The position numbers were made by a program, and so were the translations under genes. 64,000 nucleotides of DNA from Piromyces finnis finn (lineage: Eukaryota > Fungi > Neocallimastigomycota): NCBI GenBank assembly GCA_002104945.1, contig MCFH01000045.1:1-64000 (forward strand), read 5' to 3'. Shown piece after piece: positions 6,170 to 13,883 of this stretch (position 1 is its first letter; each line of letters opens with the position of its first letter). Under the pieces are notes generated by a model. The model made no database searches. It saw nothing but the letters and a program-made list of their open reading frames with translations, and was not told the DNA's origin.

Positions 6170-6936
6170 ATATTTGTTTATTTTATTATAAAATTAATAT
6201 TTGCATTGGTTATTAACAGCATTTCCCTTGTTGTTTAAGACAGCAATTAAATCTTGAATCTTAACACACTTAATACCAGTAACAATCATTTGTGCATTGA
6301 AATCTGCTGCAACTGGTGAAGTATGCTTGTAATCTGTTGGGAACCAGTTGTTACTTTTAATGTAGTTTTCACCAAGTTCTTCCCATTTACGAGCAATAAG
6401 ACTGTAAAGATCAATGTATGGAATATTCATTTCATTGGCAACTAATTTCATATAACCTTGGAAACGGCTACCTTCACCAACCTTACCATCAGTAAAGGAG
6501 AAGTTTGGAGTGTAGGATAAAAGAACTGGCTTGGCACCCTTGTTAATAACTTGGTTACACATTTGACGAATGTACCATGGGAAAGTGTGTACAACTTCTT
6601 GTTGACCATTACTTCTAGTAACAGTAACAGTTTCATCACCTTCTCCTCCATTTGAACCCTTTTCAGAAGCATTGTGTGGACCACCAACATCATTATGACC
6701 AAATTGAATAAAGACGTAATCATTTCTTGAAACACCTGCAATTAATGAATTCCATCTACCATCACGCCAGAATGTTCTTGCACTTTGACCAGACTTTGCT
6801 TGGTTGTTGACATTACAAGTGACATAATCTCTGAAATATTTACCCCAACCATTAGTTTTTCCATTATTGGCACCATATTCATCAGCAGTTGAATCACCAG
6901 CAATAAAGATGGTTCCTGGCTTGACAACTGGTTGTG
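6170..6936 (-). repeat. Left arm of a 767-bp inverted repeat (partner 13117-13883) covering the CE12 domain plus 24 bp past the stop codon
   Basis: Its reverse complement matches 13117-13883 wherever checked. In-frame and alternative-frame ORF translations (97 aa and 61 aa tracks) are identical in both copies, so wobble positions also match. Confidence 0.95.
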
Positions 6937-7701
6937 TAGGAATTTGAGCTTGAGTTGTAGTAGTGGTACGCTTAATTGTTGTAGTTGCTGTACCGGCTGT
7001 TCTTACTCTTGATGTGGTAATTGTAGTACCAGGAATACATTGAGAAAACCTTTTCAATTTAAAATACATTAACCATTTTTATATATTATTACTATATATA
7101 TTACCATATAAATTATATCAATATTATAATTTTACCATTGAGTGTAGTATTTACAATAATAACCACTAACGCAGCAATTTTCGCCATTGAAATTTGATCT
7201 TTTTATAAATAATTGAATATTAATTAAAACATTAATTTATCATAAATTAATATAGATTAATTTTTAAAATACTGTATAATTCTTATTTCTATTTTCATTT
7301 TATTTTTATTTTATTAATTTTTTCAGTGCTATTAAAAATTTAAATCATTAAACTAAATAATTTTTTCAATTTTTAAACAAATAATATTACTGTTATGTAT
7401 ATATAAAATAGAATTTTTAATTTTAAAACAAATAATTACTATCAAAATATATAATCATTAAATTGTATATTTTTTAAAAATTCAATTGAAGTATTCTTTT
7501 AAAGCTTTTTTCATTTATTTACTGTTATTATTAGATTAATGATAGATTTATTTAAAGATTTTTATATTTTAATTATAACGGATATAATTTTTTATTCTTT
7601 TTGGTAAATTACCCTCCACATTGGCCCCATGCAGCTTGACAAGCTGCATTAGCAAGTCCAAATAGTGTTATGAAACTTAATAAAAAGCCTTTAACTTCCA
7701 T
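6194..7701 (-). CDS. Secreted CBM1 + carbohydrate esterase family 12 (rhamnogalacturonan acetylesterase-type SGNH hydrolase), 3 exons
   Basis: Exon 1 7613-7701 (MEVKGFLLSFITLFGLANAACQAAWGQCGG), exon 2 about 7136-7199 (SNFNGENCCVSGYYCKYYTQW), exon 3 from about 7049 (FSQCIPG, Thr-rich linker). SGNH blocks AGDST, GQSARTF, FGHND, DYKH. Confidence 0.92.
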
Positions 7702-10678
7702 TATATATTTTATTTACTTAATGTTGTATATATATTTTACATAAAAATATATATATATATTTTTAATTTTTATTTAATCTATAAATAAAAATTATTTTCT
7801 TTTTACTTTTAAAAAAAAGATTTAATAAAACTTTTTTTAAAAAAATTATTTATTACAAACGATATTTATTAATATTTATATTTACTTTAATATAGATAAA
7901 AAAAATATCATTTCATTATATATATTATTCTAATATTATAATAAATACAAAAATATTTATTTTACCTATTATAATTTGTACTTAATCATATAAAGTATTA
8001 CACTCAATATAATATTTAATAATGATAATTTGTGTAACAATAAGTATCTCCCATATTACCTAAAAAAAAATTAATTAAAAGATGAACAAATAGTTGATAG
8101 TTGAATGATTGTATTATAAAAAATTTTTTTTGTTCTTTATCAACTATTTATATAACTTTCAACTATTTATTTGTTATATAAACTTTACATAACTTTCTAA
8201 GTAATATCTTTTATTTCCTAATAATCAAATTTGTATAAATTTAATAATATTTTAAATTGTTAATAATATATAGAAACATAAATTAAATTTTATGAAAAAA
8301 ATATTCGCATAACCAAAGATTATGTTAATAAAAATAAAATTTTTTTCCTTTTATATTTATCTATTCACTCTTTAAAAATTGTTTCAATCTTTTATTTACA
8401 TATATGTATTAAAAAATGTCCCATATAGACTAAATTATTCCATTAATTTAAACTTTTATAATATATTTTTACATTTTTATAATAATTAATAATGATAATG
8501 GAATTAAATATATGGCTTCTTTTTTTTTTTTACTACAATATCTAATTCTACATAATTTATATATTATAAATATATTATAAATATAAGCATAATTATTAAT
8601 ATGAAAAAATAATTTATTAAGAAGATTTAAAATAAAAATTTTATTATAAATATAGTTTAAATGTAAACTTTAATATTAATAAAAAATTCATTTATTTATT
8701 CTTGATAATATTAAAATATAATAATAAAAATTCCTTTTTTCATTATTAACTTTTAATTTAAAAAACTAATTAGTTTTTAATTTATTTACCACAAACAGAC
8801 TTAATTTAATTTTCAGTTCTATATTATTAAAATCGTGTGTTTTGAATTTCATGGACAGAATTGTAAATTAGTCATATTTATAATAAATAATGATTGAAAT
8901 AACTTATAATCTAATATATATTTATTATTAAAAAATATCAATACTAATATTATTTGCTTATTTTTATAATAAATATTGAAAAATATAATCTGAAGATATA
9001 ATAATTTTTATTATTATAACAAATTGACTGATATTTAAATAATTAATTTATGAATATAAATAGGATTTAAATAAAATGTTATATATGAGATTTATAACAA
9101 TATTTAATTAATGATTTATTGCATATAAATTATGATTTGTTCTATAAAAACTATCATTTCTTAAAGATTAAAATATATATTAAATCGAGTTATTCAAAGT
9201 AATCAAATAAAATATGGAATAATATACATAATTTAAATCAAAAAATCTTTTATTCTAAAATAATAATAAAGGTAGTAATAATAATAAATTTTTATTATGA
9301 ATGCTAATAAAAATAACTATTTTATTTAATAATAAGAAAAAAAATTAGAAATAATGATGATACTTTATTACTATTCATAATAATTAAGGTATATATGTAT
9401 ACTATATTATAATTATAAATTGTAAGTTTACAATGGGATAATTTCCTTTGTCATTTTTAATTTTCAATATTTAAATTTTTTAATTTAGAGAAAAATTAGT
9501 AAAAAGGAGACTAAATATAACTTTAATGAATTAAAAACTTTATATTATAATATTTATATAAATAATTTAATTTTGATATAGATTATTATTCTATTTAGGT
9601 TATTGTTTTAATGTAATTCAAATAATATTTAATAACTTATGGATAATTGATTTTAATTAATAATATTTTCCATTAAATCTTATTAAACTTTTGAAGAATA
9701 ACCTCCGAAAATTTTAATTATTGTAAATAAATAATTCAAAGTATTATTATTTTAATTAATTATAAGATTTACTTTTACATTAATGAAGATCAATAAAGTT
9801 GACTAATTATTAAATGATATTATTAAGAAGAAAAAATTATTTATATACATTATTACTATATTAATATTATTTCTGTTATTTAATAAAAAGTTGGATAATA
9901 AAAATATTGAAAATAGTAATAAAATATGTTAATATTCAATAAACTATTATTAAAAATTTAAAGTTTTATTTACCACATTACCGTAAAAATCTATTTATAG
10001 AAAGGAAAATTTTAAATAATTATATTTATATAAAAGAAATAACTATTAATTTTTAATATATATTGTTAATATTTAAAATTATAATAATTAATGAATTGAT
10101 TAAAATTTTAATAACATGGGATTATATACAATTATACACACAATTATATACAATTATATACAATTATTATTCAATTATATTAAATGGGATGAATTTATTT
10201 ATATATATGAATATTTATTATTTTAATTTAAATAATTTTCTTTTAAATATAATCTATATTGTGATTAATATTATTCCTAATTAGTATCTATATTATATTA
10301 TAATATTCATAAAATAATATGAAATAAAATTCAATGTTTAATATAGCACAGGATTACACAATTAAAAAATAAAGATTAAAAATAATCAAGTTAATTTGAA
10401 AAATTGAATAAAAAATTTTGATATTATAATTAATTGAATAATTAAATTAATAGTATGATATATTATAAAAATAAGGCGCTCTTGTGTGTAACACATAAAA
10501 ACTCTAATTTATATTATAATTGTAAAAACAAAAATTTATATAAAAATAAAACAAATCCTCTTTTTTTTTTTATTAAGTTTTAACAAAAATTTTTTATTAA
10601 TATATCAATAACTAAAAAGAATTAATAAATTTGTTTTAAATTTAATAAAAAATTATATTGTTAATCAATTTCAAAAAA

Positions 10679-13600: not shown

Positions 13601-13859
13601 TATGAAATTAGTTGCCAATGAAATGAATATTCCATACATTGATCTTTACAGTCTTATTGCTCGTAAATGGGAAGAACTTGGTGAAAACTACATTAAAAGT
13701 AACAACTGGTTCCCAACAGATTACAAGCATACTTCACCAGTTGCAGCAGATTTCAATGCACAAATGATTGTTACTGGTATTAAGTGTGTTAAGATTCAAG
13801 ATTTAATTGCTGTCTTAAACAACAAGGGAAATGCTGTTAATAACCAATGCAAATATTAA
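10679..13859 (+). CDS. Secreted trimodular enzyme: polysaccharide lyase family 4 (rhamnogalacturonan endolyase) + CBM1 + CE12 acetylesterase, 4 exons, about 960 aa
   Basis: Exons 10679-10779, 10862-10980, 11114-11213 and 11294-13859 join in frame. Signal peptide MKLYIFTVLFTYISAVFA. PL4 motifs SEIRLVLRL, IHKYDW, WFVIPSLEWKNGG, GSHYGGG, WEIGIPDRTAMEY, IMYDHIRLE. CBM1 [34 protein letters not shown]. C-terminal SGNH domain. No dockerin. Confidence 0.9.
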
Positions 13860-13883
13860 TTTTATAATAAAATAAACAAATAT
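13117..13883 (+). repeat. Right arm of the 767-bp inverted repeat (partner 6170-6936)
   Basis: Identity starts at cacaaccagttgtc (13117) and ends at ...aataaacaaatat (13883); flanks diverge immediately on both sides. Confidence 0.95.

Follow-up and report, generated by a model that had tools for sequence, protein, structure and literature searches.

A CE12 esterase module common to a stand-alone gene and a PL4 lyase fusion gene of Piromyces finnis is probably copy-corrected by gene conversion

Carbohydrate esterases of family CE12 remove acetyl groups from rhamnogalacturonan I (RG-I), a deacetylation described as a presumed prerequisite for other pectin-degrading enzymes (PMC4558045, citing Molgaard 2000), and for polysaccharide lyases of family PL4, conserved regions are thought to bind deacetylated RG-I (PMC4176579). 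Here we analysed a window of 64,000 nucleotides (nt) from the anaerobic fungus Piromyces finnis finn (assembly GCA_002104945.1, contig MCFH01000045.1, positions 1 to 64,000 of the forward strand), in which these two families meet. A stand-alone gene for a CBM1-CE12 protein (hereafter gene A) and a divergently transcribed gene for a PL4-CBM1-CE12 fusion (gene B) carry identical copies of one esterase module, which form the arms of an inverted repeat. Both catalytic families have counterparts in Aspergillus aculeatus. The CE12 enzyme 1DEO of that species resembles the P. finnis esterase over its full length, with the catalytic residues aligned; it is, however, a single-domain enzyme, whereas the P. 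finnis module either follows a CBM1 or is appended to a lyase-CBM1. RhgB (PL4, 1NKG) has all three PL4 domains and an aligned catalytic His in common with the fusion, though the catalytic Lys of the fusion's PL4 was not placed with certainty. A bacterial CE12-PL4 protein (P0020, 1009 amino acids (aa), from a Logan assembly) likewise joins a CE12 and a PL4 domain in a single chain, but it does so in reversed order (esterase first) and without CBM1, and its PL4 part, 36% identical, falls in the bacterial clade; judging from its sequence, it is an independent fusion of CE12 and PL4.

With respect to the arrangement of the two modules, the closest parallel lies in the palindromes of primate Y chromosomes, the textbook case of arm-to-arm gene conversion, where inverted arms are near-identical within a genome and diverge between species, as they do here. 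The P. finnis locus differs from these palindromes in that an arm consists of one protein module in two otherwise different genes, that the tracts are confined to this module and that homogenisation is episodic. We conclude, with a probability of roughly 80%, that the identical modules represent an old duplicate that was recently copy-corrected by interlocus gene conversion, and not a newly formed enzyme.

The repeat search identified positions 6170-6936 and 13117-13883 as exact reverse complements of each other, with 767 of 767 nt complementary (100%) and the arms 6180 nt apart. The identity opens 2 nt before the Gln codon at the start of the esterase module and runs to 24 nt past the common TAA stop codon (6194-6196 and 13857-13859), comprising 743 coding nt and 24 nt of 3' untranslated region (UTR). 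None of the 98 fourfold sites differs between the window arms, and all synonymous sites are identical. Upstream of the arms, the linkers are Thr-rich in gene A and Asn-rich in gene B and cannot be aligned with each other. An earlier note on this DNA had described CE12 arms without mismatch, including the synonymous sites and 24 bp of 3' UTR, unrelated linkers and a catalytic module as the only part common to both genes, and the exact arm alignment and the unalignable linkers agree with it on each of these counts. The same holds for the divergent transcription of the two genes, which start at 7701 (minus) and 10679 (plus), and for the CBM1 of the PL4 gene, which lies inside one exon and lacks the two introns found in the CBM1 of the CE12 gene. 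Since the repeat search found no other repeat of at least 150 nt at high identity in the 64-kb window, a chance origin of the 767-nt identity is excluded. The window is extremely A+T-rich, with a G+C content of 11-25% outside exons.

L001, used here for comparison, is a metagenome contig of 12.8 kb that stems from a close relative and matches the window collinearly from gene A through gene B to a downstream gene encoding an RRM protein. Its fusion is 87% identical to gene B at the protein level, and it likewise carries inverted arms, whose complementarity is 94% across 784 nt and rises to 95.4% in the coding part. When the module is compared between the window and L001, about 9.7% of the sites differ (about 90% identity), with a fourfold-site difference of 0.32 and changes at 7 of the 246 residues of the protein module. 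Arm identity within each genome (100% in the window and 95.4% in L001) is higher than the identity of about 90% between the species, and the copies sit at orthologous positions. Copies that had diverged freely since before the two species parted should differ about as much as the window does from L001, or more; the window arms differ at 0 of 767 sites, which argues for conversion.

In L001 itself, the arms differ at 34 of the 740 aligned sites, yet none of these lies inside an identical run of 413 nt, the rest of the alignment being about 8% diverged. A run of this length was reached in none of 20,000 permutations (p<5e-5). Within this tract, both L001 copies have 47 differences from the window in common, so that the tract must have been homogenised in the L001 lineage after its split from the window, and we interpret it as an independent conversion in the sister lineage. 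Outside the identical run, the window matches either L001 copy about equally, as expected if each L001 copy gained its own changes since an earlier homogenisation. For the window, 0 differences in 2 x 767 nt place the 95% upper bound of per-copy divergence at about 0.2%, which is some 4% of the divergence from L001 when counted per lineage.

Taken as a mechanism, the locus would comprise an old inverted CE12 pair, with one module in a secreted CBM1-CE12 protein and the other at the C-terminus of a secreted PL4-CBM1 protein. After Piromyces and Neocallimastix parted, episodes of non-reciprocal recombination (interlocus gene conversion) would have passed sequence between these modules, and because the two genes are homologous only within the esterase module and over a handful of 3' UTR bases, the tracts would stop at the linker and just past the stop codon. 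The last event in P. finnis would have covered the whole module and been very recent, falling in approximately the final 4% of the divergence that separates P. finnis from its nearest sampled relative.

The fusion is far more widespread than this one locus. A protein search returned the PL4-CBM1-CE12 order in other anaerobic fungi at 79-87% identity, and the fusion is also present in the metagenome contigs L001-L003 and in several metatranscripts. By cluster membership, its members include Neocallimastix californiae ORY13877.1 and ORY59381.1, N. lanati KAG4096861.1 and KAG4091113.1, N. 'constans' KAL6598922.1 and an Orpinomyces sp. model (P0004); over the last exon, the Neocallimastix and Orpinomyces proteins are 79-82% identical to the P. 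finnis fusion, with the same domain order. The fusion locus of N. californiae and N. lanati is flanked by a thioredoxin/PDI gene and an RRM gene, and a Kelch gene lies further upstream in N. lanati; in the window, a Kelch open reading frame (ORF) is found upstream of gene A and the RRM gene downstream of gene B. In the PL4-domain tree the fusions form one clade, the sister of which is the unfused PL4-CBM1 of Anaeromyces robustus. The CE12 tree places fusion and stand-alone (gene-A-type) modules interleaved in one 100/100 clade, with the Anaeromyces stand-alone proteins P0068 and P0069 just outside. The PL4 and CE12 trees agree on a single fusion event, which would predate the Piromyces-Neocallimastix split.

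A trace of the stand-alone partner was found in N. lanati, where a decayed CE12 pseudogene (L030:6437-7027, minus strand) lies 3 kb upstream of the fusion, placed and oriented as gene A is in the window. It was recovered as three collinear tblastn segments of 45-48% identity with stops and frame changes, and gene A was the best query. At the N. californiae locus L028, tblastn gave no trace of a stand-alone partner. With the inverted partner either absent (L028) or a pseudogene (L030), the Neocallimastix loci differ from the window in having no arm-to-arm identity. The pair must nevertheless be ancient, because it is also present as an inverted pair in L001 and because a CE12 relic lies at the place of gene A in N. 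lanati; the inverted arrangement and the fusion would thus both be older than the split between Piromyces and Neocallimastix. A metagenome scan yielded transcript-length contigs without flanks and no further genomic pairs.

Several positions carry information about the direction of the exchange. In the motif before the GDS block, all fusions read KPGT (one reads VPGT) and the stand-alone orthologues read KPN-, gene A of L001 and Anaeromyces P0068 among them; KPGT is also found in gene A of the window and in the stand-alone protein P0065. Over its first 30 nt, the window arm agrees with the L001 fusion copy at 8 sites and with the L001 stand-alone copy at 2, and the window's stop codon and first UTR bases resemble the L001 fusion copy. 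The fusion module therefore probably overwrote the module of gene A, which would make gene A the recipient. The title of the earlier note had implied that the fusion's esterase is a copy of its neighbour's, and the KPGT motif in gene A points the opposite way. One could go further and regard the pair as a self-correcting module, in which the tethered esterase would act as a master copy that repeatedly overwrites the free esterase, with a bias in at least two lineages (that of the window and that of P0065), so that free and tethered enzymes would stay matched in specificity and the free copy would decay where correction lapses, as in Neocallimastix. We mention this extension as a speculative and unlikely one.

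As for what the two proteins might do, Pfam assigned PL4 domains I-III, CBM_1 and GDSL to gene B, and CBM_1 and GDSL to gene A. The esterase matches the A. aculeatus rhamnogalacturonan acetylesterase 1DEO with E=1.5e-38 over residues 8-225 of 246 and scores 48.7 bits with Lipase_GDSL_2 (Pfam cut-off 32.9). Together, the Pfam results and the 1DEO match bear out the PL4, CBM1 and CE12 assignments proposed earlier. The SGNH set is conserved at five positions, namely the Ser of GDS, the oxyanion residues Gly and Asn (the latter in GHND) and Asp-x-x-His (HMMER against 1DEO and the D192N mutant 3C1U). The three-domain set of the lyase, made up of an N-terminal catalytic domain (PF09284/PF06045), an fn3-like domain II (PF14686) and a CBM-like domain III (PF14683), scored above the Pfam cut-offs throughout, and its direct match to RhgB is weak (E=1.2e-4). 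Of the catalytic residues of RhgB, which with regard to the structures 2XHN and 3NJV we take to be K150 and H210, H210 aligns with an invariant His of the PL4 part (H147 in last-exon numbering). Among the matches of the protein search, the nearest non-fungal relatives of the PL4 part are bacterial, at 35-36% identity, and plant, at about 30%. No Pfam match to a dockerin (CBM10) was obtained in the protein of either gene A or gene B. By homology, the same esterase would be secreted both in a free and in a lyase-tethered form, each with a cellulose-binding CBM1; the tethered esterase would strip acetyl groups from RG-I beside the lyase, which would then cut the backbone. The pairing of a lyase with an acetylesterase would, on these homologies, be a reasonable and mechanistically coherent one.

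Perfect identity of two repeat copies could also originate from the assembly, if two CE12 copies that are truly slightly different had been made identical by consensus polishing or by repeat collapse, and it is indeed the assembly alone from which the identity of the arms is known. Yet each of the two copies is complete and in frame and occupies the place of its L001 orthologue, which argues that neither is a spurious duplicate. Moreover, a 767-nt repeat with unique flanks is short relative to long reads, and the P. finnis assembly is presumably PacBio-based; copies differing by a few percent would attract uniquely mapping reads and hence escape such homogenisation. Independent data sets from the same organism, for which one DNA and four probable RNA sequencing runs were found, contain 90-99% of the 31-mers of 11294-14000, and in L001 a genuine conversion tract is present in an independent metagenome assembly of a relative. 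We consider an artefact of this kind improbable. An even smaller likelihood, of a few chances in a hundred at best, attaches to a very recent capture, in which the neighbour's CE12 would have been copied in inverted orientation onto the end of PL4-CBM1 in P. finnis. Such an event would account for the perfect identity and for its sharp ends at the module boundary, and PL4-CBM1 without CE12 does occur in A. robustus and in one N. californiae paralogue. It is incompatible, however, with the presence of the fusion in L001-L003, in three Neocallimastix species, in the Orpinomyces model and in metatranscripts at the identities given above, with the Neocallimastix synteny and the single PL4 fusion clade, and with the linker-CBM1-linker segment upstream of arm B, which is orthologous between the window and L001. 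Of the two origins that the earlier note had put forward, the very recent domain capture that would have created a new chimeric enzyme is ruled out by the fusion orthologues, the Neocallimastix synteny and the one PL4 clade, and the older fusion kept identical by gene conversion between the arms gains support from the L001 tract, the age of the pair and the synonymous identity; the comparison of orthologous loci that it had suggested placed the fusion at the syntenic locus in both N. californiae and N. lanati. Purifying selection alone, as the force holding two old copies identical, has practically no likelihood. Although the protein module is well conserved, as its few replacements between the window and L001 indicate, the identity takes in the 98 fourfold sites and the 24 nt of UTR, while fourfold sites differ by 0.32 between the species, and the arms of L001 do differ, at 34 sites. 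Synonymous and UTR identity thus rules out selection as the explanation.

A number of points nonetheless weigh against recent copy correction by gene conversion or against the direction and function that we assign to it. The perfect identity of the arms and their four junctions have the assembly as their single source. A candidate third pair, from one metatranscriptome sample, consists of the fusion L015 and the stand-alone L023, which are mutual best matches at 88.6% and have no conversion tract; homogenisation is accordingly episodic and not continuous, in so far as the two come from one organism. The direction is read from a short motif at the module boundary and a handful of UTR bases, and towards the 3' end, in the final third of the module, the states of the window agree about equally with both L001 copies. 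As for function, K150 of RhgB aligns, in a weak alignment, two residues off the invariant Lys of the PL4 part (K85), and it is homology only from which enzyme activities, secretion and synergy are predicted.

The features of the locus are collected in Table 1. Gene A consists of three exons (7701-7613, 7198-7136 and 7049-6194), which are matched exactly by the spliced transcripts L023 and L026 of relatives, with the introns missing; its exon 2 scores 22.2 bits with Pfam CBM_1 (cut-off 20.6), and the CBM1 of each gene shows the Cys/aromatic pattern of the family. The gene is under-annotated publicly, as its only record is a fragment model (P0184) of 208 aa instead of 335 aa. Gene B has four exons (10679-10779, 10862-10980, 11114-11213 and 11294-13859), all of which are covered without introns by the transcripts L013-L016 of relatives, and in relatives single spliced transcripts span PL4 to CE12. 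Its predicted product corresponds to P. finnis ORX44467.1 (P0183, 961 aa), with 854 of 854 residues of the last exon identical, and this database protein was used as the full-length fusion sequence. The fusion of gene B is already in public databases, as a hypothetical protein; an exact-match look-up of the 849-aa ORF found no record. The inverted repeat was also considered as a switch and rejected, given that a crossover between the arms would flip the spacer yet leave both gene architectures unchanged, and that neither L001 nor the N. lanati relic departs from the orientation seen in the window.

Table 1. Coordinates of the inverted CE12 modules, the genes that carry them and associated features in the window.
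Feature	Position	Strand	Basis
Arm A: CE12 esterase module of stand-alone gene A and 24 nt of 3' UTR	6170..6936	-	Repeat search and sequence reading
Gene A: signal peptide, CBM1 split by two introns, Thr-rich linker, CE12; 335 aa	6194..7701	-	Sequence reading, Pfam, relatives' transcripts
Divergent intergenic region between the start codons, 12-15% G+C, part of the 6180-nt spacer	7702..10678	.	Sequence reading
Gene B: signal peptide, PL4 (three domains), linker, CBM1, Asn-rich linker, CE12; 961 aa	10679..13859	+	Pfam, relatives' transcripts
Intron-less CBM1 of gene B, between low-complexity linkers unlike those of gene A	12930..13031	+	Pfam CBM_1, 33.1 bits (cut-off 20.6)
Arm B: CE12 esterase module of fusion gene B and 24 nt of 3' UTR; probable donor in the last conversion	13117..13883	+	Repeat search, 1DEO match, direction argument
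Last exon of gene C, a third CBM1-CE12 gene (P. finnis ORX44470.1, 337 aa)	24036..24890	-	Sequence comparison

In the literature on PL4 and CE12 in anaerobic fungi and on bifunctional lyase/acetylesterases, we found family counts only and no description of the PL4-CBM1-CE12 architecture, and our searches on gene conversion and concerted evolution in Neocallimastigomycota turned up no account of such events. The mechanism itself is ordinary; the feature is real, and it is a tidy example of domain-limited concerted evolution, as well as a clean and datable case of gene conversion limited to one catalytic module common to two different genes. PL4-CBM1-CE12 is a conserved and expressed architecture of Neocallimastigomycota, and the fusion makes a plausible candidate for an enzyme that would act on acetylated RG-I with a single polypeptide. 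If conversion is ignored, CE12 domain trees in anaerobic fungi are misleading.

A further exon of gene C, which lies 10 kb downstream of the fusion and convergent to it, is located upstream, near 25232-25341. Relative to the arms, gene C is a distant paralogue: its nt sequence matches theirs at about 69%, and it has not been homogenised with them. Gene C is 85% identical to the CE12 gene that is convergent to PL4-CBM1 in A. robustus, and the presence of its orthologue beside the Anaeromyces PL4-CBM1 implies that the lyase-esterase neighbourhood is conserved. This CE12 neighbour (P0087) was considered as an orthologue of gene A and rejected, as it is instead the orthologue of gene C; the closest Anaeromyces relative of the arms, P0068, is located on another contig than the Anaeromyces PL4-CBM1. 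Genes A (7049-6960) and C (about 24890-24800) have both CBM1 intron positions in common, and the end of the CBM1 and the start of the linker are very similar in the two (FSQCIPGTT.TTSRVRTAGTAT), with esterase cores that are only 58% identical. The signal peptide of gene A resembles that of Anaeromyces P0068 and not that of gene C. These patterns suggest that older mosaicism may exist among the CE12 genes.

Among the fusion relatives, the fusion P0005 and the metatranscriptome protein P0008 (881 aa) have identical PL4 parts, but the precomputed Pfam domains of P0008 are a CBM10 dockerin and a ricin-type domain, with no esterase; P0008 may be either a transcript-assembly chimera or the product of another module exchange. 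Downstream of the fusion, the ORF at 15673-16938 (minus strand) encodes an RRM_1 domain and Arg/Ser-rich repeats; because the orthologue of this ORF lies beside the fusion in both L001 and Neocallimastix, it serves well as an anchor for synteny. Other carbohydrate esterase genes are found nearby, and the ORF at 34913-35521 (plus strand) matches a polysaccharide deacetylase (CE4) with E=3e-35.

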